Shown: positions 425-64,000 of the stretch, in pieces
Position numbering within the stretch: position 1 is the stretch's first letter
Layout of the letters: every line of letters begins with the position of its first letter
Made by a program: the position numbers and the translations under genes
Assembly: GCF_963921235.1 (NCBI RefSeq)
Contig: NC_086115.1
Location: forward strand, 24,986,001 to 25,050,000
Source: Mobula hypostoma
Taxonomy: Eukaryota
Direction of reading: 5' to 3'
Length of the DNA: 64,000 nt
Notes under the pieces: generated by a model
Databases searched by the model: none
Seen by the model: only the letters and a program-made list of their open reading frames with translations
Told to the model about the DNA's origin: nothing

Positions 425-550
425 GAGAAAGTCTGCAGATGCTGGAAATCCAAGCAACGCACACAAAATGCTGGAGGAATCCAGCAGGCCAGGCAACATC
501 TATGGAAAGGAGCACAGTCGACGTTTCGGACCGAGGCCCTTCATCAGGAG
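425..550 (-). mobile_element. Short Penelope-derived element ending in a hammerhead motif
   Basis: Same 3' module as the 9778-10992 element (GCAGATGCTGGAAATC...ATGCTGGAGGAA...CAGCAGGCCAGGCA) followed by the reverse-complement hammerhead core. Confidence 0.8.
515..550 (-). ncRNA. Minimal type I hammerhead ribozyme motif (core intact, stem I weakened)
   Basis: Minus strand reads TC-CTGATGA-A-GGGC(CTCG)GTCC-GAAA-CG-TC-GACTG. Confidence 0.7.
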
Positions 551-735
551 TACTGGGAAGAACTTCAAACGATGTTACCTCCAAAAGGTGGCATCCATCA
601 TTAGAGACTCGCACCACCCACGCATCACTGCCACCAGAGAGGAGGCGCAGGAGCTTGAAGGCGCATAGGCAACGTCTCGGCGTTGCCACGAAACGACAAA
701 TTTCATGACGTGTTTGTAATAATAAACCTGATTCT
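551..735 (+). mobile_element. Rex1/Babar-like LINE 3' fragment
   Basis: KVASIIRDSHHP-type remnant and AATAAACCTGATTCT end shared with other copies in the window. Confidence 0.55.
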
Positions 736-1421
736 ATGGGGAAAAAGTGGGAATAAAACAGCGCAATTAATTAGCATACTATCCATTGCCCTGAACGTTA
801 GTTCCCTCAGTGGGACACCTAACGCAGTGCACCAAATGAGGAAAAGTGCTCAGGGATTGCAACTTCACTTGGAATAACTTTTGGGCACCTGGATGGTGGA
901 AGAGAAGGGGTAAACAGAAAGTTGCATCTCACAGTGCTGTCTCCTCTGCACCGGAGAAATCAAACTGGTGACTGCCTTGCGCAGCACCTGCAGAGAGTCC
1001 ATATGGTAATTACTTATAGTTCTGTGTTCCCCGCTTCTTTAATTCTCCATCCCATTCCAACTCCGAACCAACACCAACACAAATCATCCCACCTAAACCC
1101 CAGCCAGCCTTCTGGACTCAGTGTCAAACTTTGCACTTTCAGCTTCCTCTGCCTGTATTAGGATTGGCAATTCCAATGTAAATCATCCACCTGTTATTTT
1201 GACTCAGGTTTCATCCTTCCATTGGCATTGACTGACCTGCTAGGCCTGTCCCACGGCTCTCCATTGTGCAGCTTTCGCATGCCTTCGTGTTCTTGCTCCG
1301 TCTTTGGTAGCCCTTGTTAGTTTTCTCTCTCTCTCCTGCTGTCCAACTTAATCATTCAATCAGATGCTCTCTGCACTTATCCCCAAGGCAAACTTGACCT
1401 CTGCCTTTCATATACAGTGTA

Positions 1422-2236
1422 CAGGAGATTCCGTTTTGTTGGGCCATAGGTTAATCAAGGCAGCTGCTTATTTGGGACAACGCTTAAAGAACAAAACCAT
1501 TCAAGAAAACAGCCGGGATTCCCTTTGTTTGTTTGGGGCACTTTTCTGTTTATTTGGGGCAGGAATCTATTGCTGAACAGTTTCTAGTAAGTGTCAGTCT
1601 CATGCACTTGCATGGCTGTTAAACACTACACAATGCTTCAAGTGAACAGTTTTTAAATAGCGTCAGCTGCATGTGTTTGTCTTCACAAAGCAGTGATTTG
1701 TGTCACTGATAGTCGGTAAGTAATAAGCAGTAAGACAATACAGAGTTGTTTTGCTCACTGCAGTTTCAAGCATTCAAACTTGGAGATGCCAGAAACGGAG
1801 AGGAGTGAAAAATATTTCTCTACTTAAACAAGTTAAAAAATTATGAAAAAAATTAAAATATCGACAATCATCTTGAATGTTACAGTGAAAATGTAGATTT
1901 GGAGGTTGCAATCATCAGCAGCATTGTATGAAGGTAGTCCATCATCTGCACAAGGTGTCTGTGCTGATTTTGTGCATTTATAGTCAAAAGAACATGGTGT
2001 GGATGAATTCCTCCATTGATACATATTAGGAACTAATACACAGTTTTATAGTACCATAGTTGTATTGATAGCATTCTGATCTGTTCTGTTTTTCATTTTA
2101 GTACATCATGTGTTACTCACTTTGTCTTTTTTATACCTTCTTAACTAGTTCCATGAAACTTCAGCTATTAGGGCAGCCAGTTAATTGGGCCAAAATGTAC
2201 TGGTCCCAATGTGTCCCAATTAACCGGAATCCACTG
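1422..2236. mobile_element. Non-autonomous pogo/Tigger-like DNA transposon
   Basis: TA-flanked imperfect TIRs: CAGGAGATTCCG...TTGGGCCA at left, TGTCCCAATTAACCGGAATCCACTG at right; repeated subterminal motifs. Confidence 0.7.
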
Positions 2237-8999: not shown

Positions 9000-9835
9000 A
9001 CTCAGTGGATTGATGGTGACGTACCTCAAAGGGCCTATTCAGTACTGTATCTCTAAATAAAAACAAAATTTTAAAAATCAATTTAAGATTTTCTTAGTCT
9101 CTTTTGGTTCCATGCATAGATGACTAAGCTGATCTACCAATTTTGTCCCTTGCTATCCATTTGCTTTTAACATATCTGTAGAATCCTCCTGGAACTCCAA
9201 TTTGTCTGCCAGGCAACCTCATGCCTCCCTCTTAAGTCCTCCCTTGCACTTCTTATACTCCTCAAGTGCCTCATTTGTTCCTCACTGTCTGTTTCTGCTT
9301 TGCACCTCCTTCTTCTTAACCAGGTCCTTAATACCCTTTGAAAGCTAAGGCTCCCTAAATCTGTTAGCCTTTCTTTTTATTTTAGCAGGAACACACAAAC
9401 ATTGTACTCTCGATATTTTACTTTTGAAGCCCGCCCCCAAGTACCAAGTATCCTTCCCCAGAAAATAGCCTATCCAAGTTCACACCTACCAGATTCATTC
9501 TAATACCATTAAAATAAGCCCTTCCCCAATTGAGAATCTCAACCCAAAGACCAGGACTATCATTTTCCATAATTATCTTGGAACTTATGGAAACTTATGG
9601 AATTATAATCACTAGATCTAAAGTGTTCCCCTACATACACTTCCGGTCTAAACCAACAGAACCCGAGAATATTGAGCTGCCAGTCCTGCCATTCCTGCAA
9701 CCAAGTCTCACTAATGGCTATAATATCATGATTCCATGTGCTGATCCATGCTCTAAGCTGATCTGCCTTACCTACAACATACATCAAAGTTGCTGGTGAA
9801 CGCAGCAGGCCAAGCAGCATCTATAGGAAGAGGCG

Positions 9836-9872
9836 CAGTTGACGTTTCAGGCCGAGACCCTTCGTCAGGACT
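9836..9872 (-). ncRNA. Minimal hammerhead ribozyme motif (first stem I pair mismatched)
   Basis: AGTC-CTGACGA-A-GGGT(CTCG)GCCT-GAAA-CG-TC-AACTG on the minus strand. Confidence 0.7.
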
Positions 9873-10861
9873 AACTGAAGGAAGAGTGAGTAAGGGATTT
9901 GAAAGTGGGAGGGGGAGGGGGAGATGTAAAATGATAGGAGAAGACAGGAGGGGGAGGGATAGAGCCGAGAGCTGGACGGGTGATAGGCAAAAGGGGATAC
10001 GAGAGGATCATGGGACAGGAGGTCCGGGAAGAAAGACAAGGAGGGGGGTGACCCAGAGGATGGGCAAGAGGTATATTCAGAGGGACAGAGGGAGAAAGAG
10101 AGAAAGAATGTGTGCATAAAAATGAGTAACAGATGGGGTACGAGGGGGAGGTGGGGCCTTAGCGGAAGTTAGAGAAGTTGATGTTCATGCCATCAGGTTG
10201 GAGGCTACCCAGACGGAATATAAGGTGTTGTTCCTCCAACCTGAGTGTGGCTTCATCTTTACAGCAGAGGAGGCCGTGGATAGACATGTCAGAATGGGAA
10301 TAGGATGTGGAATTAAAATGTGTGGCCACTGGGAGATCCTGCTTTCTCTGGCGGACAGAGCGTAGATGTTCAGCAAAGCGGTCTACCAGTCTGCGTCGGG
10401 TCTCACCAATATTCCACATCCCATTCCCATTCTGACATGTCTATCCACGGCCTCCTCTACTGTAAAGATGAAGCCACACTCAGGTTGGAGGAACAACACC
10501 TTATATTCCGTCTGGGTAGCCTCCAACCTGATGGCATGAACATCGACTTCTCTAACTTCCGCTAAGGCCCTACCTCCCCCTCGTACCCCATCTGTTACTC
10601 ATTTTTACGCACACATTCTTTCTCTCACTCTCCTTTTTCTCCCTCTGTCCCTCTGAATATACCTCTTGCCCATCCTCTGGGTCACCCCCCCTCCTTGTCT
10701 TTCTTCCCAGACCTCCTGTCCCATGATCCTCTCGTATCCCCTTTTGCCTATCACCTGTCCAGCTCTCGGCTCTATCCCTCCCCCTCCTGTCTTCTCCTAT
10801 CATTTTACATCTCCCCCTCCCCCTCCAGCTTTCAAATCCCTTACTCACTCTTCCTTCAGTT

Positions 10862-10897
10862 AGTCCTGATGAAGGGTCTCGGCCTGAAACGTCGACT
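10862..10897 (+). ncRNA. Minimal type I hammerhead ribozyme, intact; predicted cleavage after 10893
   Basis: AGTC-CTGATGA-A-GGGT(CTCG)GCCT-GAAA-CG-TC^GACT; stem I AGTC/GACT; palindromic ACGT in place of stem III. Confidence 0.85.
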
Positions 10898-11999
10898 GCA
10901 CCTCTTCCTATAGATGCTGCTTGGCCTGCTGCGTTCACCAGCAACTTTGATGTATGTTGCTTGAATTTCCAGCATCTGCAGAATTCCTGTTGTCTGCCTT
11001 ACCTACAATACTGCTTGCTTTGAAAAAGACGCAACTCAGAACATTGGTCCCTCCGTGCTCAACCTTTCAGTTCTTGTCTTTGTATGTAGGCTTAACATCT
11101 GCTTTCCCCACAACCACTCCACGAGCTGCTCTGGCACTCTAGTTCCCATCCCCTTGCAACTGCAACCTCTCACAGCACTGGCAAACCTTCGCACAAGGAT
11201 ATTGGACACCTTCCAGATCAGGTCCGAGCCGTCCCATTTGTACAGGTCCCACCTTCCATGGAAGAGAGGAAGTCCCTGTTGTACATACTATTTATTGTAA
11301 GTTGCTCATTGCACACTTAGACGGAGACATAACATAAAGATTTTTACCCCCGATGTATATGAAGGATGTAAGAAATAAAGTCAATTCAATTCAATGATCT
11401 AAAAGTTCTGAAGCCCTCACTCCTGCACTATGTCCTTAGCTGCATGTTAAACTGCATTATCTTCCTATTTCTAGTCTTACTAGCAGGCAGCTTGGGTAGC
11501 TATCCCAAGATCATCACCCTGGAGGTCCTGTCCTTTACCTTAGCACCTAAATCCCAGACCTCACTTTTTAGGACCTCATCACCCTCCCTGCCTATGTCAC
11601 TGGTACTGACATGGACCACATCTTCTAGCTGCTCCCCATCCCCCTTAAGAATACTATGAAATCAATCTGAGTATTTCTAGTCTGTTCCCCTAAACACTAA
11701 AACCCATCACTACTGCTCACTTCTTCTTCCCCTTCCCTTCCAGGTCACCGAGCCAGACTCATTGCCAGAGACCTGACCAGAGGTTTTCCTCTGTTCATAG
11801 TATTTAAAACAATATACTTGTTATTGATGGGAATGGCCTCGGGGTGTCCTGCACTGGCTGCCGATCGCCTTTCCCTCTCCTGAAGGTCACCCAGTTCTCT
11901 GTGTCCTACATCTAAAGTCTACAAGCTGCAGCTTAGTGATCTCAAGATCCACAGTAAATCATCAGGAGTGTAGCCGAGCAAATGGAGGCCATGTCAGTG

Positions 12000-14030
12000 A
12001 GGGTCATGAGGGAAACTCTGTAAGTTCTAAGGTTGTGATAGAGATGGATGAGATGGACCAGACATTAAGATAGCAAAATTTGACGAGGCTGACTTCAATA
12101 TGGGGTGACAGGATAAAAGTGGACTTGGAGCAGCTACTTGCAGTTAAGGTCATACATGACCAACGGGGGCCATTCAGAAATGAAACAGGGCTGAGGATCA
12201 ATATGTTCTCATAAAGGTGAACAGTAAGGCTAAAATTTCCAAAGAACCCTGAGTATCAAGGAGCATTAATGATTAGAAAAATTAAGAAAGCATAGCTTTT
12301 GGCAAGCTTAGAGAAAACGGAATAGGCCTGTCAGGGGATTGAAGGTCTAAGGAGGATGTGCAGAGGTCATAAGGGAATTCTCATCTATATTCACTATGAA
12401 AGAGAACATTATAATTGGGGAATTCAAGCAGTCTAGAACAACTTACCATGAAGAAGTATGAAATTACCATGAGGAAGATGCCTTTGTGGGTTTAAAAGGA
12501 TATTAATCACCAAGGCCTGATTAGATGTATTGGAGGCTGCTTTGGGAGGCAAGGAAGAAGGATGCACGGCTTTGACAGAGGTTTTCAAATCTTTGACCAC
12601 AGAAGACAATAGCAGGATGACTAGAGGACAGCAAATGTCCTTTACTAGAGAAGGGCAGCGGCGATAAGTCATGTAATTAGAAGCTGGTAAGTGTAACATC
12701 AGTGAAAAGGGAAGTTATTGAAAAAAGCTCTGAAGGACAGCATAAATCTGGACTTGGAGAGGCAGAACTTGACTAGTGACAGATAGGATTTGTTAAAGGG
12801 AAGTCCTGTTTAGTTAATTTGGTGACATTTTTTTGATAAGCATAGTGTAGTTGATGTAGTTTATATAGACTCTAGCTGGGTCTTTGACAAATTCAACTTT
12901 GGAGACAGGTTCAAACATAAAAATCCATAGGATCCTGGACAACTTGGTAACTGGATCTGAAACTGATTTAGTGAGAGTAGATATTGAGAATCTTTTCCCC
13001 TTATCAGAGATGTGATAGAAAGCAGAACAGCGATGGTTGATTTTGTAATTGGAAGCTTGTGACTAATGGCATGCCACAAGGAACACTGCTGAGGCCTGGG
13101 CTGTAAATTTTATATGTAAGGACCTGGATGAAGATACAGGAGGCATTGTTACTAAGTTTGCTGATGACACAAAGCTTGGTGGTGTTATTAATACTGAGCA
13201 CAGTAAACTTTGGCTACAGAACAGTATTGTTGAGATGGTAAGATGGGTAAAGAAATGGTAAATTTAAGTTAATTTTGGAAAATGTGAGGTACTGCGTATG
13301 GCTAAGATAAACAATGAATGGTGGGAGTAGTGAGGAGCACAGCAAATGAGTATACATAAACACAAAGAGATTCTGTAGGTGCTGGAGATCCAGACCAACA
13401 AATAAAATGAAATGCACGGCAGGTCGGGCAGCATCTGTGGAGGGAAATAAACAGTTGACATTTCAGGCCAAGACCCTTCATTAGGACTGGCAGATATTGA
13501 AGGCAACATGGCAGATAATTAAGGTCTTTAAGAAGCAATATTTGCCTTCAGTAGCCAGGACATGGAATATAAGTGCAGGGAGGTTACCTACCAACTACAT
13601 AAGAGATAAGTGCAGTTCTGATCATCACTATATAGGAAGGATTTAATTTCATTGGAGATTCCCTAGAACTATTCCCTGGGCTGGAGCGATTCAGCTATGA
13701 AGAGTGACTTGGAAAGGCTGGGTTTGTTTCCTTTGGAACATTGGAGGCTGATGGGGACTTGACTGAGGTATGAGGGGCATTGAGAGGGTAGATATTGAGA
13801 ATCTATTCCTCTTAACAGAGGTGTTCAGAGATGGCAAAGGAAATTTAGAGGGCATGTAAGGAAGATTCTGTTTTCACCCAGAGGGTAGTTGGAATCTGGA
13901 ATACTTTGCCAGAATGAATAGAAGATGCAGGTACTTCCACATTTAATAAGTACTTAGTTAAGGACTTGAATCACCATGGTATAGAAGGCTACAGGCCAAG
14001 AGCTGGAAAATGGGATCAGTATGACAGGTC
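12000..14030 (+). mobile_element. Old, heavily decayed CR1 LINE
   Basis: GFVKGKSC, KFADDTKLGG and CR1 C-terminal remnants with many stops and frameshifts. Confidence 0.7.
13357..13490 (-). mobile_element. Short Penelope-derived element with decayed hammerhead
   Basis: Same module; core mutated to CTAATGA...GAAATGTCAACTG. Confidence 0.7.
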
Positions 14031-14604: not shown

Positions 14605-14874
14605 AAAGGCATTTGATAGCTGTCAAGCAAATGGTGAGCCAAGGGGTTTGTCGTGCGCTGTATGACTGTTGATCAGTGTCTGCTAAGGAATGATTCAAAG
14701 GTAGTGAACGGGAGAATACTGTGTATTAAAGGAGTAACTATATTTGAGTTACTCAAAGGGATAATATTGAGACTAAGATTACCAAAAACGGAAGGGAGCC
14801 ACAGAGAATAAAGACTGTGAGGTCATGTAGATTCAATAAACGTGGTGTATCTCTACAGATGTACCGTGGAGAGT

Positions 14875-14974
14875 TAGTCCTGACGAAGGGTCTCGGCCTG
14901 AAACGTCGACTGCACCTCTTCCTAGAGATGCTGCTTGGCCTGCTGCGTTCACCAGCAACTTTTATGTGTGTTGT
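14875..14974 (+). mobile_element. 100-bp Penelope-derived hammerhead mini-element with 9-bp TSD
   Basis: TSD GTGGAGAGT at 14866-14874 and 14975-14983; sequence nearly identical to 10861-10959. Confidence 0.85.
14876..14911 (+). ncRNA. Minimal type I hammerhead ribozyme, intact
   Basis: AGTC-CTGACGA-A-GGGT(CTCG)GCCT-GAAA-CG-TC^GACT. Confidence 0.85.
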
Positions 14975-17100: not shown

Positions 17101-18332
17101 CGATTACCTTTTCAGGGACAAACCAAATAGAAAATGCTGGGGATGCCCTGCAGGTCAGGTAGCATCTGTGGAGAGAGAAAAATAACATCTGAAGTCAATG
17201 ATAAGTCATTTAGATTTTTAGTGCCTTTGTTGCTTCTCACTTATCAAATGCTGCCGTTCAGAATGAAGCCCACATCCTAAAAAATCAATAGGTATCTGTG
17301 ACTAAAACATAAGAGCATGAATAAAAACAAATTTAAAGCATGAAATACAGAGGGTGGCAAACCATGAATATATACAATATCTAATAAGGTCCAAGAAAGG
17401 ACTGTCAATAGAGTGGACACTGTTCAATCAACAAACGGAACTGGGCTAATGTGCTGGGCAGTTAAAAGAGCAGAAGTCCAAATCCCGCGTACATTGTGAT
17501 TACTTTTTTTTTCAAAATCTTGCTCTTGTGTAATAAATTGTGGGTTTCAAGACTGAAGAGCGTTGTTTTCCGTTGTGGGGTGAAAGGAGAAGTGAATGCG
17601 AACCAGAGTCCAGAATTTAGATCACAGCTCCGCATCGAGAAAGTGACGCCCTGGCTACGAGAGGAAACGGGCTGTAGTATAACTCGGCTGTGATTTCGCA
17701 TGATTTCCAGGCAATTTTAATCTTCGAATCATTATGGTGCTAAAATTAGTAATGAATAAACTTTGTTTCCGGTTTCAGAGCAACCTGCAGGAGAGAATGA
17801 CCTGAGTGTGAGCCCAGTTGTTCGAATCAAACTCCGCTGTTTAGTTTTATGTGGATGACTTGGGAATGATCAAGAGCTGCATATTGGAATCAAGTGTCCC
17901 ATCCCGACACAGAAAATGCTTCATAATGTCCAACGCGCGCATACACACACACACACACCTACACCCTTGCAACCACTCCCCACAAATTCACATCCATGCC
18001 CTATAAATAACAAGAAGGGATACTACAAGATCACATCGAGGAAGACGGGAACGATGCCAGTAAGGGAAGTATAACGGTAAACGTACATTATCCGGCGCAC
18101 TTGGGCCGAGAGAACCTACAGTGAATATTGCAGGAAGAGGGCTGGATCAGACTGGAGGGAATGAAGGTGGCCGGCTGTTAGTTAACACGTGAAAATGCGT
18201 GAGAGAGGCAGTATAAACCAGAGACAAGAGCGTCTGTATGTGCCTGTGTGTGCGCGCGAGAGAGAGTTGAATGACCATGGATGAAGAATTCCATTAAAAA
18301 AAAAGTAGGAATTAGGCAGAATTGTTTAGAAA

Positions 18333-20248: not shown

Positions 20249-21406
<1,158 letters not shown>

Positions 21407-22647: not shown

Positions 22648-22651
22648 TGTG

Positions 22652-29590: not shown

Positions 29591-31819
29591 CACCATTCTT
29601 CACCTATCTTCAGTCTACCCATCACCTACTAGCGCCATTGCACCTTTTTCCTCTGCTCTTTATGTTGGCTAGCTTACCAGTGTCAGTCTCATATGCAAGA
29701 TTTCAATTCAAAACAGCAACAATACTTTGTCCCCCATGGATACGACTGTATGCTTTGAGTTCATCCAGCAGTTTGCTCTTTGTTAACTTTTAACAGAGAT
29801 GGGAAAGACAACAGATGTGTCTTGACGTTAAAGAATAGGATAAAGACAATAGAAAAAGAGATCTAGGTTCAGTAGGTCAAGGAGTAGAATCAATGGAGAC
29901 ACAAGGTAATGCAGATATTGAAATCTGAAGCAACAAGCAATCTGCTGGAAGAACTCAATGGGCCATGCAGCATCTATGGGAGGAGTAGAATCATTTGGAG
30001 GCTGTTATAATTGTATATAAAGGCATCCAAACAAAAATTGGTAATAGCAATGAGCCAAGAAATTAGAGGTCGTTGTCATATGGGCAATACAATAATGATG
30101 GGGGATATAATCCATATACTAACTGGGAAAAATAAATGAGCAGAAAAAGTTGAAAGGACGCATTAATGGGCTGTGTAAGATATGGATTTCCAGATCTGCA
30201 TGTTCAGGAACCAATGAGGGAATTGCTATTTTAGATCCAAGATGATGTACATCAGAAAAGGTCAATTGATGATCTAGTAGTTAAGGGGTATTTAGGACGA
30301 AGACTACAGAAGCATGAACTTGGAAAGCGTTAGAATTGTGCAGAGGTAGCGTGTATTTATGGCTTGACAAATGTTTGGATTCTTCGTGGTAACCGACAGA
30401 GTAGATAAAAGTGACTTGATAGCATTAATCTGGAATTTCAGATGTTTCTTTTGATAATGTGTCATGCAAGAGGTTATTAAACAAAAGAAGAGTGTATAAT
30501 GAACAGTAAACGTAATAACCACTGTGGCTTTGGAAAGTGGGAGGAAAATGGAACACCTGGGCGTTACGAGCAGGACATGCAAACACCACACATACAGCAC
30601 CAGAAGTCGGAAGCAAACTCAGACAAACTCCCTGGAGGTGTGAGCACTGTCTGCTCTCAGAATCTACTGGTAAAGGTAGTCTAGATTTCCAACCAACGCA
30701 GGCTGGTAGGAAATTCCAGAATTTCACCCCAGCGATGTTGGATGAATTTTGAAATAATTCCAAGTCGGGCTGGATATAAAATCCTATGTAGTTACCAACT
30801 TAAATGTCATACACCTCTCATTATCTAAATAAAATATATTGATCTTATTGATACAATACAGTACCTGATACCACTGATAGCCTATGCTGATACTTCCAGT
30901 ATCCCATTAATTTCATCATTTTTACTGCACTTAATTATATCCATGCGAAGACAGGTTTTTCCACCCTGCAGAGTTTGCACAGCAATGGTTTCGATGAACT
31001 TCGAGGCCCAATTTATACTTTCACCATTCTTACCCGGATTGTTACATGTGCAGGCATACCACTTCACAGTGAGCAAACCCCATTCACCTGCAGTTCAACT
31101 GACAGTCCCAATGACCTTTTTCTTCAAGACTCAAAATGAACTGCAAACCTGGAAGTTTTGGACCTTTCCTGACCTAATTTTGTAAATATCAAGTATTAAT
31201 AGCTACTTGTTTTAAAATTTAAATTTATTGATAGGGCTGTAGTTTTGTGTAGCTTCCCTCCGCCTTTCAAACTTGTCATAAATAAAGCACCGTTAATGTG
31301 GTTCAAAAACTTAGGAAGGCTGATATTTTCAAAGAGTTGAATAGATGACACTATATAGGTCATGGATGTTAAAACAATCCTTCTGATTATAGATTTTTAA
31401 TAAAGAAATTCAGTTATCTCACCTGACAGTCCAAAAATTCTGAACAATATTTTGAATGTTTCAGGAAGTACCTGTGCATAGAGGGATGTATGGATGTTTT
31501 TTATGCTAACTTTTTATGAAATCCCAAAAACTAGTTTGCAATACTGAGGCCTGTGGAATTAAAGAATCAATAGATAAATGGATAGAAAATTGATAGAAAG
31601 CAACTCATGATGGTAGATGATTGTGTTGGAGTTGGTGCTTCTCAGGGATCAATGCCAGAAATTCAGTTTGGAGGTACAGATACGTGTTTCACGCTTGAAG
31701 GCCAGTGATTTGAACAGATGCTACAGGATATTTGTCGATATTAGGCCATTCCAGGTCTGGGGTTGGATGATCGTGCGAGCAGGAGACATGAGGAAGCCCA
31801 GGGACTGGTGAATTGGCAT

Positions 31820-36175: not shown

Positions 36176-36339
36176 TAGAGTCCAGAGTGGGTCTTAAACT
36201 TAGACCTACATGATCAGAGATAAGCATGCTGTTGCCGAGTGAAGGCCACTGCAATGTGATTAAAGTGTAAAACCTACTGAACTTTGAATGCCTTAGTTTT
36301 GTTATAATCTTTGAAGAAGTCAGTAAAGATTACTTAAAG

Positions 36340-36545
36340 GCAAAAAAGTGCAGATGCTTGAAATCTAAAATTAAAAAGTTCTGGAAATATTCGACAGGTC
36401 ATGCAGCATCGGTGGAGAGAAAAACAGAGTAGATATTTTAGGTTGATGGCCTTTTGTCAGAATGAAGGATCATTGACTTGAATCATGAACATCATTTCTC
36501 TCTCCACAGAGGCTGCTTAACATGCCTAGAACTTCTCGCACTTGT
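36340..36545. mobile_element. Old fold-back Penelope-derived element
   Basis: GCAGATGCTTGAAATC...GCAGCATCGGTGGAGAGA with inverted TCTCTCCACAGAGGCTGC. Confidence 0.55.
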
Positions 36546-45400: not shown

Positions 45401-45959
45401 ATACACAGTATACTGTCACTTGCTGAAGCTTTCAGCAGACTATATATTTTCAAACTCATTTTGTCACTGTTCTTTGCCAAATAGTTTCTTCATGACAATT
45501 GCAAACAGAGTAGATATAAAAATATGCTGTTGGAAAATACGACTGCAGAGGAGGACTCAAGAGTTCAGGCTTCATGGCACTCCCAACATGGAATACAGGG
45601 GCTCCCTGGTTTAAAGATTACCTAACTTACAGAAATTCTGAGTTTACACAAATTCTCCCATATATTTTAAAGCATCTTTCAAGATAGTACTAAAATAATG
45701 ACAGTATTGTCTGGTAATCATAAACAACTGAATACAGTATATATTACATAGGTTTAATACTAGGTGGTGTTAGGGTGAACGTTTGCTAAAATGAAAACAT
45801 TTCAAGTGTACGTAGAGCTATAGGATAATGGGTTGCTATAGAAAATGGACGCTTTTGAATTAGTGAGAAAAAAAAGAAAATCGACTTATGGACAGTGCTC
45901 CGAAAAACCTTACCAGGAACTCCTTAATGAAAAACAGGAATAAAATACAAAGCTTAATA

Positions 45960-46070
45960 CGAAAAAGTCTGTAAATACTGAAAATGCTGGAGGATCTCAG
46001 CAGGTCAGGCAGCACCTATGGAAATTAATAGATAGTTGACTTTTTGCACCAAGTCCCCTCTTCAGGACTT
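45960..46070 (-). mobile_element. Decayed Penelope-derived hammerhead element
   Basis: AATGCTGGAGGATCTCAGCAGGTCAGGCAGCA...AGTTGAC...TCTTCAGGACT. Confidence 0.55.
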
Positions 46071-46683
46071 AAGCCTGCACAATAAAAAAAATCAATGGCA
46101 AGGTCTAATCATTTATTGGTAATTTAGATATTTTTACTCAAGTAAACTATAATCCAAAGCTTGAACTTGATCATCACTTTAAGAGGCAGCAGACCAACCC
46201 ATACTGTACATCCATGCTTTCTCTTGTGAAATTGGATGGGGTCCTGCAAGCCCTTGCATGCATTTTACTATTCATTCACCCAGCTCTGCTTCAGGTTTAT
46301 GAACACAGCTCAAAATTCAAAGTAAATTTTTTTCCAAGTATGTGTATTTTATACAACCTTGAGATTTATTTTCTTGCAGGCAGCCACAGGAAAACAAACC
46401 AATGTGCAAAAGAGGGCAAATCATACAAATATTTTTTTAAAAAGTAAATAAGTAATACTGAGGATACAAGCTGCAGTCTCTGCAAGTGGTTTTTGGTCCA
46501 AGTCTCTAGTCTGTGTGCACCGAAACTCAGACTACCATCCAGTAATACACAGTATTGCTCAATGAGATACATTATTTGAGAACTTACAAGTATTATTATA
46601 TTTTGATGACACTGCTTTGCATGCTAAAAGTTCAAGAACTTACACCAAGGAATACAGTATCAGTAAAATCATACTTGGTATGT

Positions 46684-49381: not shown

Positions 49382-49820
49382 CGTCCGGAGCCCTCGCAGC
49401 CCCTTCTCCTCCCGAAGGACCGAACCGACCCTCCTCTCGCTGCTGCCGAGGCCAGGGCCTCCCCCGACCACCTCAATCGAGATCCTTCTGGCCGCCGCCG
49501 CCGCGCGTCCAGACGCCTCGGACGGGCGCGCTCTCCCCGCCGATGGCCACCGCGTGCCCCCTCACTGCACGAACGCACGTAGGCTGTTCCGCCCCCCTCG
49601 TGCGTCACAGGCACTCGCGCGCCCTCCCTGCCCCAACTCGTCTCTGCTATTGGCCGGGGACGTGCGGAGCTGGAATCGTCAGCTCGGTTGATTTTCTCGA
49701 CACAGCGCCTATCGGAGCTGTCCGCATGCGGAACTACAACTCCCATCACCCCCCGTGCAGGCACATCCTTCGGTCACGGCGGCAGTAGCGTTGAATCTGT
49801 ACCGTTATCGCCCCGCCACA
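49382..49820 (-). promoter_or_regulatory. ADO CpG-island 5' UTR and promoter
   Basis: High CpG; GC boxes; CCAAT (ATTGG near 49649); NRF1-like palindrome CCGCATGCGG 49722-49731; ACTACAACTCCCA (ZNF143/THAP11-type) 49733-49745. Confidence 0.75.
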
Positions 49821-50764: not shown

Positions 50765-50863
50765 AAACACAAAATACTCTGCAGATGCTGGGGTCAAAGC
50801 AACACTCACAACACGCTGGAGGAACTCAGCAGGTCGGGCAGCATCCGTGGAAACGTTTCGGGC
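50765..50863 (-). mobile_element. Short Penelope-derived element with internal deletion through the hammerhead
   Basis: Nearly identical to 51325-51432, but GAAACGATCAGTCAA(C/T)GTTTCGG is collapsed to GAAACGTTTCGG. Confidence 0.8.
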
Positions 50864-51414
50864 ATCGTTGTAGAGCTTTACTTTTGAGGGAACAATGTTG
50901 TGCAGTGGGGCAGGTTTGTAGAGGACAATCATATGATAAATGTAAGGTCTAAGCTGTCATTAACTTCCATAATAAATTGTTTAATGGCTTTAGTGATTCA
51001 ATGGAAAATCCAGGTTATTTGAAGATATCAAATGTCTTTAGAGATTTGGTAAAGATAAACAGTTTTAAGCTGGCAAAATGGTTTGACTTTCTTGAACACA
51101 ACAGTTATTCCCAGATACTTAGATTATATGATGGTTGCCGTCCACCTTTTCATGCATGCCTAAGTGCTGTTTAGAACGTAAGAACGTTTTCGACAAGGAC
51201 TGGCTATTTGGCCCAACAAAGCTGGCCAAATTCCTATTCACACTGTGTGTTGAAATAACTATCAAGTTTAGATTTGAAAATCTCTAAGATACTACTCTCA
51301 ACTACACAACTAGGTAGTTTGTTCACACAAAATACTCTGCAGATGCTGGGGTCAAAGCAACACTCACAACACACTGGAGGAACTCAGCAGGCCGGGCAGC
51401 ATCCGTGGAAACGA

Positions 51415-51454
51415 TCAGTCAATGTTTCGGGCCGGAACCCTTTGTCAGGACTGA
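51415..51454 (-). ncRNA. Hammerhead motif with core mutation (CTGACAA), probably inactive
   Basis: TCAGTC-CTGACAA-A-GGGT(TCCG)GCCC-GAAA-CA-TT-GACTGA on the minus strand. Confidence 0.6.
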
Positions 51455-51705
51455 AGAGGGAAGGGGTGGAAGCCTTATAAAGACGGTGGGTGGGGGTGGG
51501 AAGGAGAAGGCTGGAGAACCACCTCCTTCTACTACCCATTGTGTTTTCCCCTATTCCTTCTTCACCTTTCCTGCCTATCACCTCCCTGCTTCCCCTCCCC
51601 CACCCCTTTATCTTTCCCCTTACTGGTTTTTCACCTGGAACCTACCAGCCTTCTCCTTCCCACCCTCGCCCCACCTTCTTTATAGGGCCTCTGCCCCTTC
51701 CCTCT

Positions 51706-51745
51706 TCAGTCCTGACGAAGGGTTCCGGCCCGAAACGTTGACTGA
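51706..51745 (+). ncRNA. Minimal type I hammerhead ribozyme, intact, 6-bp stem I; predicted cleavage after 51739
   Basis: TCAGTC-CTGACGA-A-GGGT(TCCG)GCCC-GAAA-CG-TT^GACTGA. Confidence 0.85.
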
Positions 51746-53009
51746 TCGTTCCACGGATGCTGCCCGACCTGCTGAGTTCCTCCAGCGTGTTGTGAGTGTA
51801 GGTAGTTTGTTCCATGTGTCCTTAACTCACTGTGTTAAAAAATGCTTCCTGATGTTAGTCTGAAATCTACCTTTAACCGGTCTCCACCTATGGCCCTGTG
51901 TCCTTGCAGGTGGATTAATTTTGAAGTAGCAGCTGGCATTCACCTTACTTATACCTTTAATGATTTTGAGCACTTCAATCACGTCTCCTCTCATTCTGTG
52001 TCTACTTAGGCTAAAAAGTTTTAATTCTTTCACTCTTTCTTCATAGCTCATACCCTGCAAACCTGCAGGTATAGCTGAATGTAAGAAAGATCTACTAGTG
52101 TGCTGTAGTGCTCTATGACTAATATTTGCTGGGGTGGGGGCTGCAAATTAAAATTCACAGTGCATGGTTGTTAGCAGATGTCCTCATTTCTGCCGTTGTG
52201 GTGTTAAGAAGGTTATTGATGAAGCAGCTGAAAGGGACATTGCCCTGCAAAACTTATTCAGGGCTGAGATCATTGACCTCCAGCAAGCACAACCATCACC
52301 CTAGATATGCAGCAAACAGAAAACCTCCCTTTGATTCTTGTTGGCATCACTTTTACCAGGACTCCTAGACACCTTTGTTGATCGAATTCAGCACTGATTT
52401 ACGGCTGTTGTTCTTATCTGAAGTCTGGAGTACAGTTCCTGCCTCCACATGTTCAGCCAAGGCAACAGGAAGGTCTGGAGCCGAGATATCTGGATGAAAC
52501 CGAAACCGAGAATCGGTGAGCAAGTCATTGTAAGTGCCATGTTATAGCACTGTTGAAGCCACCTCCTATATGAAGAATAGTGTGAAGGGGTGATGACTCG
52601 ATGAGATATGGCGTCTTATTATGTCCTGAGAGTAAAACTTGGCTCCATCTGAATTCATCACCCAGGATGCTGCCACATGATCTATCCAGTTTTATTGAAT
52701 TTTAATGTAACCATTTTGATACAATTGAATAGCTTGCTAGTTAATAATCAACCACAGAGTTCAAATTCAAGTTATTTTCATGGGTGTACATACAAAGGGT
52801 ACAAGTACTATTAAAATTAGGTTTGTACAGCAGCAGCTCAGTACATTACAACCACAACAAAAATAAACTACATTAACCTAAATTAACATAAATTATACAT
52901 AACTTACATGGCACAATAAACAAAACTAATATAATGCCATTACTTCCATTGCCTGAACTTTGTTGGGTCTTTGCAGTTGCATGTAAATCAAACTGGATCA
53001 GAATGATAG

Positions 53010-53162
53010 GCACAAGAAATTCAGCAGATGCTGGAAATCCAGAGCAACACATACAAAATGCTGGAGGAATTCAGCAGGTTATAGTGGTCTATCAGTACAT
53101 ATACAGTACACTCTTTCCATTGATGCTACCTGACCTGCTGAGTTCCTCCAGCATTTTGTGTG
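53010..53162. mobile_element. Small fold-back Penelope-derived element lacking the hammerhead
   Basis: ACAAAATGCTGGAGGAATTCAGCAGGT with inverted ACCTGCTGAGTTCCTCCAGCATTTTGT. Confidence 0.7.
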
Positions 53163-56720: not shown

Positions 56721-57359
56721 ACATTTCTACATATGTTGGAAATGTGCTTTTTGGTTTCAGTATTGAGTGACTTAATTCTGATTTTAAGATCTAAAGAGAA
56801 ATTAATCTTTGGTTACTCATGCTCTATGTAGGCAGTGTAGGCAAAATAGGACTTCATGACAAAGACACAAGTACCTCCCGATTCAGTCATTATCTCAGTT
56901 AAGACTAGAACATATCTTAAGTGGTTAAGTGGCTTTTATTTTTTTATATGTTCTATTTCAGACTTCAATGTCAATGTCCAACCTTTTAAGAACATTTTTA
57001 TTTGATATAGACATGGGGATATTGAAGTTTTTTTGCTTTTTTTCCTAGTAAAGAATAAAACTATGCTATTTATCCTCTTATTTGGTCAGTCTGCTGTTTC
57101 CATTAATGAAAAATAATTTGTTGACTATGTAATCACTGTGAACTCTAGAATTTATACATTTAAGGGTTTCTGGATTCCAAATATGTTTTCAATTGGAAGG
57201 AACAGTTCAGTGAAGAGTAGCTGAAAAAAAAACAGGGCCTAAATAATCGAGATTAAGATTTAATTCAGTTGTATAGTAACATTAGAGAGTCTGCAAGCTG
57301 CCTGTTTGAGTTCTCTGGAATGTTCTAGTTAACATTAATCTCTGAACTAATATCACACA

Positions 57360-57790
57360 GAATAAGACATAAGAGCAGATTTAGGCCATTTGGCCAATTG
57401 AGTCTGCTCATAGCGGATTTATTATCCCTCTCAACCCCATTCACCTGCCTTTTCCCTGTAATCTTTGCACCCTTCCTAATCAAGATCCTATCAGTCACCG
57501 CTTTAAATATACCCAATGACTTGGCCTCCATAGCTATATGTGGCAATGAATTCCACAGATTCATCATCCTCCGGCTAAAGAAGTTCCTCCTCATTTCTTT
57601 ACTAAAGGGATATTCTTGTATTCTGAGGCTGTGCCCTCTGGTCCTAGACTCCCCCTCTATAGGAAACATCTTCTCCATATCCATTCTATCTAGGCCAGTA
57701 TTCAATAGATTTCATTGAGATTTTCCCCCTTCCTTATTCTTCTATACCCCAGTGAGATGAGGCCTAGAACCATCAAATGCTTCTTCTAGG
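57360..57790 (-). mobile_element. CR1 LINE 3' fragment
   Basis: GLDRMDMEKMFP..ESRTRGHSLRI..RRNFFS..NLWNSLP. Confidence 0.8.
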
Positions 57791-58357
57791 AAGATAATCT
57801 GGTCAGCTATTGTAATGCTGTTTATAGAGCACTGTTGTGAATAGGATGACGTATGATTCTCTATTACAGCTGACCCTACCCTTCAAAAGAGTATTCGTAT
57901 GTACTGATATCATGGAAGAGATTATATCATTGGCGCACAGAGGCTTGCTTCTCATTCCAATCCTTGTCAGAATCTGAATGAGAATTATTGCCATATATGA
58001 TATGAAGATTCAAAAACAAGAGAACAGCTGCAGATGTTGGAAATCCAAACAACACACACAAAATGCTGGAGGAATTCAGCAGGCCAGGCTGAACAGAGTC
58101 AAAGTAGAGTCACTGCTGTGCCGTCTTCATGATTGCATCAATGTGTGAGGCCAGGACAGATCCTCAGAATTACTGAAACCCAGGATCTTAATGTTGGTTG
58201 CTCTTTCCACAGCTGGCTCCTCGATGAGAATTGGTACAGACTCTGTTTCCCCCTTTAAGGAGCCTGCACCGGAGCCCTTGACATGGTAACTTGAGTCAAT
58301 TTGGATACCAAATTCCTACCATTTTAGATTAACTATCCCAAATGTAATTGATTATTT

Positions 58358-59377: not shown

Positions 59378-59475
59378 AAACACATAAAATGCTGGAGGAA
59401 CTCAGCGGGGCAGGCTGCATATATTGGAGGGAAATGAACAGGCAACAATACAGACAGAGGCCCATCATCAGGAAT
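59378..59475 (-). mobile_element. Decayed Penelope-derived hammerhead element
   Basis: AATGCTGGAGGAACTCAGC...GAGGCCCATCATCAGGA. Confidence 0.55.
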
Positions 59476-60509
59476 GGGATAAATGATGGTATGTGTGTGT
59501 GTGTGTGTTTTTTTTTGTGGTAAGGAAGTCAATATAAAAGAAAACAAATTAAAGGTGGGTAGAGGGTACAAACATTTATATTATTTTAATAATTGAAGTT
59601 TACTTTATAAGTTGGTGGATGTATTGAAATATATAATGGGATGTAGTTTTGATTTGGACAAACTGCTGTTGAAAATTTGGATGAATGAATGTTTCCAATA
59701 AAATGCATGAAACCACATACAGTATCATTAAATCCTGCATTTTACATAAGGAAACTTGACTGTCTGGCTGTTATTTCATGCATCCTTTGGATTGTCACTC
59801 TGGCATCTGGAATTGTGTGTCAATTCCATTTTATAAGTGCAAGACCTTTAATCAGGTGCACCAAAGTTGTGGGTTTTGTTGCTGATGTATCTGGACAGAG
59901 AGTGCAACATGTTTCCAGATTCACTTGTGAAACATAAGCTTTGTTACTACCAAGGTGGCAGTATATTTTCCTGGCATTGAACAGCTCAGTTTGAAGTGAA
60001 AGTTTTTAAAGAATACCAGGGGGTTGGTCTTCAGTTTTGTAGGACCTATGCAACAAAATTCCTTTCTTAAATTTGTTCACCTCTCTATTTGCAATACCTT
60101 AAAATGCTTAAAAGCTACTTTTTCTTTGATCCTTTGGAAACCTGTCCTAAATCGTCCAATGTGCCTTGCTAGTATTTTTTGTGACACAGCTCCACATAGC
60201 ACTTGAAATGGTTACGGTGTTCAAAAGGTGAATAACTATAAGTCACTACGATTGCTGTTGCTGCTGTACAAGGACCACAGCCAGACCAATGGGAAGAGAA
60301 AATGATCACCAGTGATACAACGTACGTGTCAAAGACTTTTAATCCAGGCACAGCTCAGATGAAAGTTTCAGATTAACTTTTTTTGTCACACGTTCATTGC
60401 AACATACAGAGAAATACATTGTTTGCATCAAATCAAATCAGTGAGTATCAGCTGGGGGCAGCCCACAAGTGTCGCCACGCTTCCGGCACCAACATAGCAT
60501 TCCCACCAC

Positions 60510-60675
60510 TTACTAACCCCATTTATCTGTCTTTAGAATGTGAGCAGAAACCGAAGCATCCAGAGAAAACCCACACAGTCATGAGGAGAATGTAGACAAA
60601 CAGTGGCAGGAATCAAACCCTGATCACTGATTGGTACTGTAAGGTGATTGTGCTAACCACTTTGCTACTGTGACA
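60510..60675 (-). mobile_element. V-SINE fragment
   Basis: GAAACCGAAGCATCCAGAGAAAACCCAC...TGCTAACCACT. Confidence 0.6.
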
Positions 60676-61342
60676 TCCACAACATAAGGGCACACAAGAC
60701 ACGATAAAAAAAACAGCAGTAATTAGCCACCCGATCACACAATCCTGCTCCACATTAAATACGATCATGACCAATCTGCTCCAAGTCTCAATTCCTCTTT
60801 TGTGCCAATTCCTTGTACAGGTATATCAAAATTTAACTACCCCTTTAAATATTTCCAGTGATCTAGCCTCCACAACTCTTCAGGGTAGAGAATTCCATAG
60901 AAATTCCCAATTACCCCAGTTTTGAATGACCATTCCCTCATCTTGTTCTCTTATTCAAGACTCTACCACTAGTAGTAACATCTCAGCATATACTCTGGCA
61001 TGATCCCTTAGGATCTTTATGTTTAATGAGATCAGGAGAAGAGTTTTTAAAAAATTGTTTGAGGAATTCAGTGGGTCAGGCAAAATCTAAAGAGACAGAG
61101 GGATATTTTAATTCACTGAGGCAGTGACACAATATTCAGCAGGTAGAAGATCACTGGGATTTGTTCACATTAGCTGTCCAACATGGTTACTTGTTCCTCC
61201 TTTGCTGTTAGTTTTAAAGAACCTTAACAGTAGAGCCTGGCTTTATAGTCTCATATCTCTGAGACATAAAACTATAGTGGGTGGTGTCTTAACAAAGCCC
61301 TCCTACAAACTCTGTCATGCAACCCATTTTTAAAAACTGGCA

Positions 61343-64000
61343 TGTTTTCTATTGTGTATTTAATATATCAGTAATATTTGAATAATATTGTAGACATACT
61401 ATTTGACTAAGCATTCTTTGTTTCAATAATTCATTATGGGTTGTATGTAAAAGTATGTGTGTCGCATATGTAACTCTGCCACCATGTCATATCTACATGA
61501 CTCGCTGAAAGTAAAAAAGAAACTGGACTCAAGTAATCCCTGGCTCTCCTTTGCTTATCTTTCAATTAATTTATGGAGTTACAAAACATAACAGTAGTGA
61601 TGAGGATGTTTTAAATGAAGTGCAGCGTGCAGTGTGCTTTCTTCGCAAGAGGAGAAGACAGCCGAGTTAAATGAAAGGCATAAATGGACAAAATTCACAG
61701 GTTCATAAACAGTGAGTACTGAGTGCTAATAATAACAATACTTTTTTTTTAAAAAAAAGCAGAAATGGCTGGCTGCATCGGAAATTGCACAAGAGATAAT
61801 TGGTTGATACATACTGAGTGAACAGAGTAGTATCTTGAAGCAAATGAAGTAGCCAATGAAACACGAGTGACCTTGTTATGTACATTGTGTAAAAAAGCAT
61901 ACCGTTTGCTTAGAAGTTTGACTACTCCAACCAACCAGCTTAAATGAGCTTTGCTGATATTGTGAAAGTAATGCAGGAACATTTAGAAACCATTGTTGTT
62001 TGCAAAACACTTTTGATTTCATAAACAGAATCAAAAGGAAGAGCAAACACGAGGAAATCTGCAGATGCTGGAAATTCAAGCAACACGCACAAAAAATTGC
62101 TGGTGAATGACTGGCACAAATCGAAGAAGAGTTAACCAGCTTCAAGATTCACAACCAATCCTCTGTTATCAAGGTCATATTAAGCTCTCTTTCCCAATCT
62201 TGCTAAATCTTAAGTAAAGGATAATTGTCCTGTTGTAATAGTAAATTATAAATTTTCCCAATAAAACCTTTCACTAAAGGGTTCATTTTTAAAATAATAT
62301 CTAACAGGTCAGAATCTTGTATATATGGAAAATTACTTAAATATTCTTGTAAAAAATGGCTGACCTGAAGATCTTGCAAAATATGCTGACCTGAAGATAT
62401 TGCAAAAAGTGCTGGTGAACGCAGCAGGCCAGGCAGCATCTATAGGAAGAGGTGCAGGTCCTGACGAAGGGTCCCAGCCCAAAACATCAACTGTACCTCC
62501 TCCTATAGATGCTGCCTGGCCTGCTGCGTTCACCAGCATTTTTTGTGTGTGTTGCTCAAAAGGAAGAACAGTCCATTTCAGTGTAGGTGGCTGAATTGAA
62601 GAGATTATCTGAGCGTTCTCAGTTCAGTGATAAGCCTAATGATGCACTGAAAGGTTGTTTTGTTTGTGGAATCTTGCAGGAAAGCATTCAAAAATGGCTG
62701 CTAATTGAGCAGTTGAATTCTGTGTATCATTGGAAACTGCAGACAGATGCAATTGAGTTGTGGTCAGGAATTAAAGTGAGTGAGAGCAAAATAGCAACAT
62801 CTAAACAGAAACTGGCCTGGTTGAGCAAGTTGTGTTACGTATGTGCCAGGAGCTCACATACATCAGACCAATAATGTTTTAAAGGTGAATCTTGCAGAAA
62901 ATGCAACAAAGTAGGACACATGCAAAGAGCATCTCGGGCAGACAAAAATAAATAGACTGCACAGGGATTGGAAAAAAAGATAAAAAGTCAAGTTGTGGTT
63001 TCAAAAAGAGCACTAATCTGCATGCTGTTGATAAAAAAATCTGATAATGATGAGAGTGACACAGGACTAAGTAGCCTTGAGATTTACAATGTGAAAACTA
63101 GCAAGAGAAAAGTAATATAACTTACACCAGAAGTGAACGGCAAATTAATTAGCATGGAAAAGGAACCAAGCTCAGCTGTTTCAGTCATTCCTCATAATGA
63201 GTTTGAACAGCATTTCAAAGATACTAGACTGAAACCTGCAGATATAAAACTAAAGACATACTGGAGAAAAGATAACTCTTGTGGGAATGACATTTTTAAC
63301 AGTGAAACACAACAACGAACAAGACAGATTGTGATATGTGGTAAAAACAGGGGAGGTAGCATTGTGGGCACGCGATTGGCTGAGGCATCTACAACTTGAT
63401 TGGTGGTCTATCCACCATTTCAATGCCACGTCTCCTGCAATAGGGTCCTGAAAGTGAATTAAGAAAGGTACTGGATGATGCCCCAGTAGTGTTTGATGAT
63501 GGCACTGGAAAACTCAAACATATCAAGGGTAAAATAGTATCAAATGAAAATGCCACACTCAAGTTTTACAAAGCCCATCTGTCTCCTATACCATCTGTGA
63601 TAAAATAGTCAGTGAGCTAGATTGCCTGGAGACTGGAGGAATTCTTTCCAAGGTTGAGTGAAACCTATGGGCAACACCAGTGGTCCCAGTAGCCAAGAAG
63701 TATAGGTCTGTTAGGATCTGTGGTGATTTTAGTGTTACCATCAACCCAATACTGAAAGTAGATCAGTAGCCACTGCCCAGGATGGAGAATATCTTTGCAA
63801 ACCTTTCTGGAGGAAAATAATTCAGTAAAGTGGACTTAGCTGAAGCCTACCTACAGATGGAGATGGAAGAAGAGTCCAAAGTGTTTCATACCATAAACCC
63901 TGACAACGCTTTATCACTATAATAGGCTTATTTCTGCAGTAGCATCTGTACCCGCACTCTGGCAGAAAGTCATGGACCAGGTGCTGCAAGGCCTCCCAGA
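61343..64000 (+). mobile_element. Decayed Ty3/Gypsy LTR retrotransposon (5' LTR about 61343-61593, gag, protease, RT; runs off the window)
   Basis: LTR ends ...CATAACA, then PBS-like GTAGTGATGAGGAT; two decayed CCHC knuckles (CYVCARSSH, CRKCNKVGH); protease remnant VNGKLISME...SAVSVI; [34 protein letters not shown] with stops. Confidence 0.85.
62043..62555. mobile_element. Chimeric Penelope-derived insertion in Gypsy gag, containing an L1-like ORF2 fragment; 12-bp TSD
   Basis: TSD TCAAAAGGAAGA at 62031-62042 and 62556-62567; PLE 3' end 62043-62107; L1-like segment about 62108-62400; fold-back 62404-62544. Confidence 0.75.

Follow-up and report, generated by a model that had tools for sequence, protein, structure and literature searches.

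Minimal hammerhead ribozymes are known from metazoan Penelope-like elements (PLEs), where they are of type I, lack helix III and loop 3, and carry a palindromic A-C-G-U (Cervera & de la Peña 2014, PMC4209133). They also have an unpaired nucleotide between A9 and position 10.1 and a short stem I of 5 to 6 bp, and they occur mostly as single, truncated, genome-dispersed copies, with some opposite-strand pairs 100 to 700 bp apart. We found all of these features in copies of a repeat within the 64-kb stretch of ray DNA analyzed here (the window). The window copies differ in having a stem II of only 4 bp, closed by a tetraloop, versus 7 to 8 bp reported for Schistosoma families, and one subfamily in the window has G.U at pair 10.1-11.1, unlike the published motifs. 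Cartilaginous fishes were not named in that paper. For minimal hammerheads, cleavage as dimers is credited to Lünse, Weinberg & Breaker (RNA Biol 2016/17), as cited in PMC6765202.

PLE insertions characteristically are strongly 5'-truncated, lie next to an inverted copy that is itself 5'-truncated, and may bear a tail of 30 to 40 bp at one end only (PMC8557442). The mechanism has been described for the Poseidon PLE of Anolis carolinensis (PAc; Frangieh et al. 2024, PMC11167929), in which two RT start sites set the tail and both target strands are cleaved and extended, accounting for tail-out fold-backs of the kind seen here. PAc and the window element also share the placing of the hammerhead shortly upstream of where the insertion ends on its 3' side, with approximately 85 to 92 nt from the cut site to the RT start in PAc and 66 and 100 nt in the window. 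In both, the 3' end takes one of two forms that differ by about 35 nt (the "tail"). The ORF of PAc begins inside the hammerhead, and the window holds no 5' part of the ray element for comparison. A candidate Anolis-like frame starting at a conserved ATG in the tail box (10914) runs into a stop in the young subfamily.

Two other systems are instructive. Nested truncations with a common 3' end and head-to-head inverted pairs within one TSD are also produced by L1 through 5' truncation and twin priming. Unlike L1, the window element would use a different class of enzyme (GIY-YIG nuclease, telomerase-like RT), lacks poly(A), and would have internal RT start sites that leave a one-sided tail. Meanwhile, animal non-LTR retrozymes (PMC7229834; Li, Clavereau & Pollet 2026 preprint 10.64898/2026.07.22.740005) resemble the window copies in being short and noncoding, in carrying a type-I hammerhead, and in their kinship to PLE terminal regions. 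However, they form direct tandems that release circularizing unit-length RNAs, whereas the window contains only dispersed 5'-truncated copies and inverted pairs.

Ten hammerhead sites in one repeat

To characterize the hammerhead sites, we aligned them across the 64-kb window. All ten were homologous copies of one repeat, with a common layout of stem I, CUGANGA, A, a 4-bp stem II, GAAA, CG, UH, and stem I' (Table 1). This bears out an earlier note on this DNA, which had listed ten hammerhead copies and singled out three as intact. Our check of core and stem I returned exactly those three, at 10860, 14874, and 51706. The minimal-hammerhead core (C3-A9, G12-A14, A15.1-U16.1, and H17) is intact in these and in two further copies, 9835, whose sole failure is a CpG change at position 1.1, and 513, which has one stem I mismatch. 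The unpaired extra nucleotide 9/10.1 is A in 8 of the 10 copies, with G or U in its place in the two copies that have decayed furthest, and pair 10.1-11.1 is G-C in five copies and G.U in five. Young copies have the palindromic ACGU by virtue of C15.2-G16.2. Judged by its letters, the motif has the features that define the minimal hammerheads of Penelope elements in the literature (Cervera & de la Peña 2014, PMC4209133), in line with the note, which had described a minimal hammerhead whose stem III is cut down to a palindromic ACGT.

The pattern CTGANGA..GAAAC has six exact matches in the window versus 0.53 expected, and none of 100 shuffles reached six. Five of the matches are family copies and the sixth, at 38504, is unrelated, so the excess reflects amplification of one repeat and not independent occurrences. 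A profile search of the window returned 22 hits in about 17 insertions. There are more hits than ribozyme sites because many copies are tail-only fragments without a ribozyme. The resulting density, approximately one per 4 kb, replaces the one per 6 kb estimated earlier. Rfam hammerhead models gave no hit at the gathering score, nor at E <= 10, in the whole window or in a 101-nt stretch, which is expected for a motif without helix III. Rfam did catch one old fold-back (36345-36542) as a weak miRNA-like hairpin.

TABLE 1 Members of the repeat family in the window and their parts
Feature	Position	Strand	Description
Insertion 1, left arm	9778..10412	-	5'-truncated; GIY-YIG ORF end 10162-10407, ~290-nt 3' UTR, short-form 3' end
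Hammerhead of insertion 1 left arm	9835-9874	-	1.1 G>A
Insertion 1, right arm	10413..10993	+	ORF end to stop 10563-10565, 3' UTR, long-form 3' end, ~34 extra bases
Hammerhead of insertion 1 right arm	10860-10899	+	Intact; predicted cleavage after C10893
Insertion 1 TSD	9763-9777 and 10994-11008		15 bp
101-bp insertion	14874..14974	+	Begins at stem I 5' strand; intact hammerhead 14874-14913; short-form tail
101-bp insertion TSD	14866-14873 and 14975-14982		8 bp
Insertion 2 (second subfamily), left arm	51325..51514	-	Long-form tail
Hammerhead of insertion 2 left arm	51415-51454	-	G8>A, G16.2>A
Insertion 2, right arm	51515..51799	+	Intact hammerhead 51706-51745 (GUU cleavage triplet, 6-bp stem I); short-form tail
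Insertion 2 TSD	51312-51324 and 51800-51812		13 bp
Insertion 3, left arm	62043..62457	-	Tail only, long form; start within 1-3 nt of predicted cleavage site, exact point ambiguous
Secondary insertion in insertion 3 left arm	62108-62409		302 bp, 10-bp TSD
Insertion 3, right arm	62458..62555	+	Starts inside stem I; short-form tail
Hammerhead of insertion 3 right arm	62455-62494	+	Decayed: G12>A plus CpG changes
Insertion 3 TSD	62031-62042 and 62556-62567		12 bp
Older copy	421..561	-	Hammerhead 513-552, core intact, stem I mismatch 2.3; long-form tail
Old copy	13360..13491	-	Hammerhead 13450-13489: G5>A, three CpG transitions; long-form tail
Old copy	45957..46071	-	Hammerhead 46032-46071, 12 changes; internal deletion in tail
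Old copy	59380..59477	-	Hammerhead 59438-59477, 13 changes
Tail-only insertion	29893..29980	-	88 bp, without hammerhead; 5' end 14 nt past cleavage site
88-bp tail-only insertion TSD	29880-29892 and 29981-29993		Exact, 13 bp
Second-subfamily copy	50767..50862	-	Truncated inside stem II 3' strand; long-form tail; 95% identical to 51317-51413
Old fold-back pair	36345..36542	- then +	Decayed hammerheads, both arms
Fold-back pair, tail-only arms	53010..53162	- then +	Left arm long form, right arm short form; without hammerhead
Tail-only fragment	58028..58091	-	Long form
Tail-only fragment	17130..17177	-	

Variation among the copies looks like decay. In the comparison, 95% of stem II cells are paired, and the earlier note had pointed to a stem II that varies while staying paired. 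All of that variation is one-sided switching between G-C and G-U. No pair has changed at both of its positions, and shuffled controls attained the observed pairing in 159 of 500 trials. It is not covariation. For stems I and II together, we found no compensatory covariation among the window's copies, and shuffles equaled the observed values. CpG transitions make up 19 of the 65 changes in the hammerhead and fall on 8 of its 41 columns. Individual copies decay neutrally, mostly at CpGs. MFE folding favors other pairings, including a GACG/CGUC helix that would sequester core bases when N7 is C, and MFE folds of monomers and dimers gave neither a hammerhead dimer nor a helix III duplex, a result that is uninformative because the motif relies on tertiary contacts. 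Long-range pairing within the tail, between AGAUGCUG and CAGCAUCU, is also predicted, but its energy is weak and it shows no compensatory change.

Insertion anatomy and Penelope origin

The approximately 17 insertions have arms of between 88 bp and about 635 bp and form nested 5' truncations with a common 3' end or ends. Their 5' ends are scattered across the ORF, 3' UTR, stem I, stem II, linker, and tail. Five insertions are tail-out fold-backs, that is, head-to-head inverted pairs. Three of the five each lie inside a single exact TSD (15, 13, and 12 bp), each of whose sequences occurs only twice in the window. Every one of the five joins a long-tail arm to a short-tail arm, the two differing by 34 to 37 bp. 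In insertion 1, both 3' ends occur within the same ORF-bearing insertion, 66 and 100 nt past the predicted cut. Together, the fold-backs, the 5' truncation, and the one-sided tail match the published anatomy and mechanism of PLEs. We also considered whether 5' ends cluster at the cleavage site, and rejected this. Only the left arm of insertion 3 begins near it, at a junction made ambiguous by the self-complementarity of stem I, and the other tail-only copies begin elsewhere.

At its upstream end, the longest copy still includes the C-terminal part of an ORF for a GIY-YIG endonuclease. Specifically, it retains an 82-aa stretch ending in a stop, and in this sole copy with both landmarks the hammerhead lies approximately 300 nt past the ORF stop. 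A Pfam search with the 82-aa remnant itself gave nothing significant, so its identity rests on long homologs. The remnant had 739 protein matches, including 109 at E <= 1e-10, which nearly always fell on C-termini, and the long matches P0088 and P0133 have RVT_1 followed by a C-terminal GIY-YIG domain. Furthermore, contigs from other runs carry the ORF on upstream of 10412 into ..FY|IGET.., the YIG motif. We found no RT domain of this family in the 64-kb window and no direct partial tandem (pseudo-LTRs, or pLTR) there, and such tandems may occur elsewhere in the genome. We therefore infer an autonomous element from the ORF end and the contigs. The ORF remnant, the fold-back insertions with their one-sided tails, and the TSDs together uphold the Penelope derivation that the earlier note had proposed.

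The same note's claims of high copy number and of more than one subfamily were likewise borne out. In four runs of 69 to 241 million letters, 17,292, 11,350, 2,732, and 423 contigs fell on the element, versus none on neighboring unique DNA (12053-13138) in the same runs, and at least two subfamilies are represented in the window itself. Short copies are 95 to 96% identical to the ORF-bearing copy over the part they share. Between subfamilies, identity is 68 to 85% in the hammerhead and 61 to 83% in the tail versus 44 to 59% in the 60 nt upstream and 47 to 69% in the linker, and contigs from other members of the family begin to differ immediately before 10862 and immediately after 10898. Hammerhead and tail are thus more conserved than their surroundings. 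Domain searches also confirmed an EGR gene (DUF3446 plus C2H2 fingers, 20267-21403, +) and an ADO gene (PCO_ADO, 48620-49471, -).

A best explanation and its alternatives

With a probability of roughly 0.85, we consider the copies to be dead-on-arrival insertions of one high-copy, endonuclease-encoding PLE family whose RNA carries a minimal type-I hammerhead. By analogy with the Anolis PLE in vitro, the element protein would nick both DNA strands and prime reverse transcription from both, and reverse transcription would begin at either of two internal RNA sites. Priming on both strands from two internal start sites would produce the fold-back shape and the one-sided tail. Lacking a helix III of its own, the hammerhead may pair its A-C-G-U with the identical tetranucleotide in another hammerhead. 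Cleavage would then require a dimer, formed on multimeric or paired transcripts of the element, and would probably be assisted by protein. In source elements, the hammerhead would process element RNA; in the scattered window copies, it is presumably a passenger decaying at CpG sites.

An unlikely alternative is that the motif is no longer a nuclease and is kept in source elements as a structured site for protein binding or positioning near the RT start sites. Joint conservation of hammerhead and tail between subfamilies is consistent with such a role, as is G.U in place of G-C at 10.1-11.1 in half of the copies. Published PLE minimal hammerheads have very low activity in vitro, and in Anolis, mutating the hammerhead left in vitro insertion unaffected and the cut site was not the end point of any RNA-seq read (PMC11167929). 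However, the same study found that C3 and G8 mutants abolish cleavage and that the double mutant restores it, with protein present, and in the ray the core, the cleavage triplet, and the palindromic ACGU are all kept in the youngest copies of two otherwise differing subfamilies.

The earlier note had favored a retrozyme-like, nonautonomous system, and this was not supported. None of the 22 profile hits forms a direct tandem, copies that lie close together are always inverted, and the nearest intact copies on the same strand (10860 and 14874) are separate insertions 4.0 kb apart. Copies share 3' ends with 5' truncation, and the longest, the only one reaching far enough upstream, enters the endonuclease ORF and is collinear with a coding element. 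A narrower version seems quite improbable to us, namely that units of about 100 bp consisting of hammerhead and tail (e.g., 14874-14974) form a self-standing nonautonomous lineage, SINE-like or a retrozyme forerunner, copied in trans by the Penelope enzyme. The 5' end of the 101-bp unit does coincide with the start of the 5' strand of stem I, and the unit is flanked by a TSD of its own; the right arm of insertion 3 also begins inside stem I. In two runs, 25 and 6 contigs lose similarity just before 10862, with heterogeneous letters upstream, and the 2026 preprint derives animal retrozymes from PLE pLTRs and reports them in the sole chondrichthyan it sampled. Yet 5' ends are scattered from ORF to tail, and absence of a direct tandem means that no unit-length RNA could be released or circularized. 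In the contigs that lose similarity before 10862, the sequence further upstream looks like the C/T-rich 3' UTR found in other subfamilies and not like random flanks, and the close identity of the short copies to the ORF-bearing one also argues against a separate lineage. It is doubtful that the unit is a minimal trans-mobilized template whose 5' end is fixed at stem I. If it were, it would be an elasmobranch example of a still-living intermediate that connects Penelope tails with animal retrozymes.

Finally, a chance resemblance to a hammerhead within a repeat, compatible with the lack of any Rfam score and of covariation in the window, is highly improbable, as the motif lies in the 3' region of a PLE (canonical PLEs are described as universally carrying such motifs there), forms a conserved island between subfamilies, and has three features beyond the bare core pattern (the extra nucleotide after A9, G10.1, and palindromic 15.2-16.2).

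Significance for elasmobranch repeats

Hammerhead motifs at the 3' ends of Penelope-like elements have already been described for this class of element, and the sighting reported here is real but ordinary, opening no new question. It adds a ray, and thus an elasmobranch, family to the long list of animals with Penelope-like elements bearing minimal hammerheads. The window also provides clean textbook examples of the PLE insertion signature, in the form of fold-backs within one TSD and a single-sided tail. These are of use for repeat annotation, given that Rfam-based ribozyme scans miss the motif and that the fold-backs mimic miRNA hairpins.

One repeat behind the ten hammerhead sites

The hammerhead pattern CTGANGA..GAAAC was found six times in the whole window against an expectation of 0.53. 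We attributed five of these six matches to one repeat, along with every one of the ten sites listed in the earlier note, which were real and proved to be copies of the same sequence. In sense orientation, the hammerhead of each copy is bounded by the two strands of stem I, ..AGUC on the 5' side and GACUG.. on the 3' side. Between them come, in order, CUGANGA, an additional A, a tetraloop-closed stem II of 4 bp, GAAA, C-G, and U-H. Three copies are intact and two are nearly so (see table), while the remaining five of the ten carry 7 to 13 changes each. A profile derived from the copies matched the window 22 times, representing about 17 insertions, many of which contain only the tail (the segment 3' of the hammerhead) and no ribozyme. 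The Rfam hammerhead models did not match the motif at any threshold tried, as fits a hammerhead without helix III.

Features in the window
Feature	Position	Strand	Detail
Hammerhead copy	513-552		near-intact; sole fault at position 2.3
Hammerhead copy	9835-9874		near-intact; sole fault at position 1.1
Hammerhead copy	10860-10899		intact core, stem I of 5-6 bp
Hammerhead copy	14874-14913		intact core, stem I of 5-6 bp
Hammerhead copy	51706-51745		intact core, stem I of 5-6 bp
Single insertion, hammerhead plus tail	14874-14974		101 bp; 8-bp TSD
Single insertion, tail only	29893-29980		88 bp; 13-bp TSD
Fold-back, insertion 2	51325-51799		exact 13-bp TSD
Fold-back, insertion 3	62043-62555		exact 12-bp TSD
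Older fold-back	36345-36542		
Older fold-back	53010-53162		
EGR	20267-21403	+	Pfam
ADO	48620-49471	-	Pfam
LINE-type RT (RVT_1) fragment	25165-26838	+	
LINE-type RT (RVT_1) fragment	35601-36254	-	
LINE-type RT (RVT_1) fragment	37847-38464	+	
LINE-type RT (RVT_1) fragment	57325-57705	-	

For minimal hammerheads of Penelope-like elements (PLEs), Cervera and de la Peña (2014) noted features that went beyond their search pattern (PMC4209133). The ray motif shows these features, including G10.1-C11.1 and a palindromic 15.2-16.2, although the 10.1-11.1 pair is G.U in half of the ray copies. Published activity of PLE minimal hammerheads is low, dimers included. In Anolis, the PLE hammerhead cleaves only with the element's protein; insertion in vitro proceeds without this cleavage, of which RNA-seq shows no trace (PMC11167929). 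With C at N7 in the ray, pairing becomes possible between the core-box GACG and the cleavage-site CGUC (10866-10893, 14880-14907, and 51712-51739), and minimum free energy folding chose this inactive helix for the copies at 14874 and 51706. The intact copies at 10860 and 14874 share a strand upstream of EGR2, with 4.0 kb between them; they could be joined only through a hypothetical read-through transcript. None of the three intact hammerheads falls inside an EGR or ADO exon.

Penelope origin and insertion anatomy

The longest copy (insertion 1, 9778-10993) consists of two inverted arms enclosed by exact 15-bp target-site duplications (TSDs; 9763-9777 and 10994-11008). Inward from the shared 3' end, both arms contain the hammerhead, a C/T-rich UTR of about 300 nt, and a stop-terminated open frame. 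The 82-residue ORF remnant matched 739 proteins, almost always C-terminally, and in the long matches a GIY-YIG nuclease at the C-terminus comes after a reverse-transcriptase domain, the defining architecture of endonuclease-bearing PLEs (PMC8557442, PMC11167929). Pfam, run directly on this short remnant, gave no score; in contigs of other sequencing runs, the frame carries on beyond 10412 in the upstream direction and reaches the YIG motif. PLE insertions are marked by strong 5' truncation, a neighboring inverted 5'-truncated copy, and a tail of 30 to 40 bp at one end only (PMC8557442), all of which recur in the ray. The Penelope origin proposed in the earlier note is correct.

In each of five fold-backs (two inverted arms with tails outward), one arm extends 34 to 37 bp beyond its partner. 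Published work traces the PLE tail to a pair of internal sites where reverse transcription starts; in vitro, the PLE enzyme acts on both target strands, nicking and extending each (PMC11167929). By analogy, such two-strand nicking and extension would generate the tail-out fold-backs of the ray and is their likely origin. A conserved box at the tail start, AGAUGCUG, is complementary to CAGCAUCU in the optional 34- to 37-nt extension (10910-10993 and homologous tails), and the short-form 3' end sits in the loop between them. This predicted nine-pair stem, for which we saw no compensatory changes among homologous tails, might be related to the stem-loop where the Anolis enzyme begins reverse transcription. 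In insertion 3, the fold-back junction (62449-62462) lies within 1 to 3 nt of the predicted cleavage site; its position is ambiguous because the stem I strands are mutually complementary and there is an additional C. A 302-bp AT-rich element (62108-62409) interrupts the left arm of this insertion, and the 10-bp duplication on either side of it reads TGCTGGTGAA (62098 and 62410).

Truncated copies or a separate system

In four small runs from four organisms (69 to 241 million letters), 17,292, 11,350, 2,732, and 423 contigs lay on the element, versus none on unique DNA at 12053-13138, evidence for a very high copy number and for the element's occurrence in several related organisms. The further reading of these copies as a retrozyme-like, non-autonomous system was unsupported. 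No direct tandem occurs in the window, every close pair is inverted, and the copies are nested truncations with one 3' end in common. PLE minimal hammerheads have been described as mostly single truncated copies, with some opposite-strand pairs 100 to 700 bp apart (PMC4209133). The residual case for a separate non-autonomous lineage is the unit of about 100 bp, whose 5' end falls exactly at stem I; across all copies, 5' ends are spread over the ORF, UTR, stem I, stem II, linker, and tail, and short young copies are 95 to 96% identical to the ORF-bearing copy across the common part. Nothing in the window requires a separate retrozyme-like system.

Decay of copies and probable constraint on source elements

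The earlier note pointed out that stem II varies while staying paired; as an argument for covariation this was not supported. Among the window copies no pair had changed on both sides, stem II varied only by G-C to G-U switches, and the 82.7% of cells that were paired was equaled with shuffled partners in 159 of 500 trials. CpG transitions made up 19 of 65 changes and were concentrated on 8 of 41 aligned columns. Individual copies decay neutrally and, since the columns hit include the N7-G8, C15.2-G16.2, and C17-G1.1 steps, each new copy is soon disabled. Between subfamilies, the hammerhead (68 to 85% identity) and tail (61 to 83%) were better kept than the 60 nt upstream (44 to 59%) and the linker (47 to 69%), and contigs from other family members cease to be similar immediately upstream of 10862 and immediately downstream of 10898. 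Together, these sequence comparisons point to constraint acting on the source elements.

Scattered through the window is a different retrotransposon family, represented by fragments of a LINE-type reverse transcriptase (RVT_1) that has a conserved C-terminal region. Weak miRNA-like Rfam matches to MIR8643 and mir-3192 (36386-36535 and 53062-53150) are hairpins of Penelope fold-back insertions, and such hairpins are likely to give rise to false miRNA calls in the ray genome.
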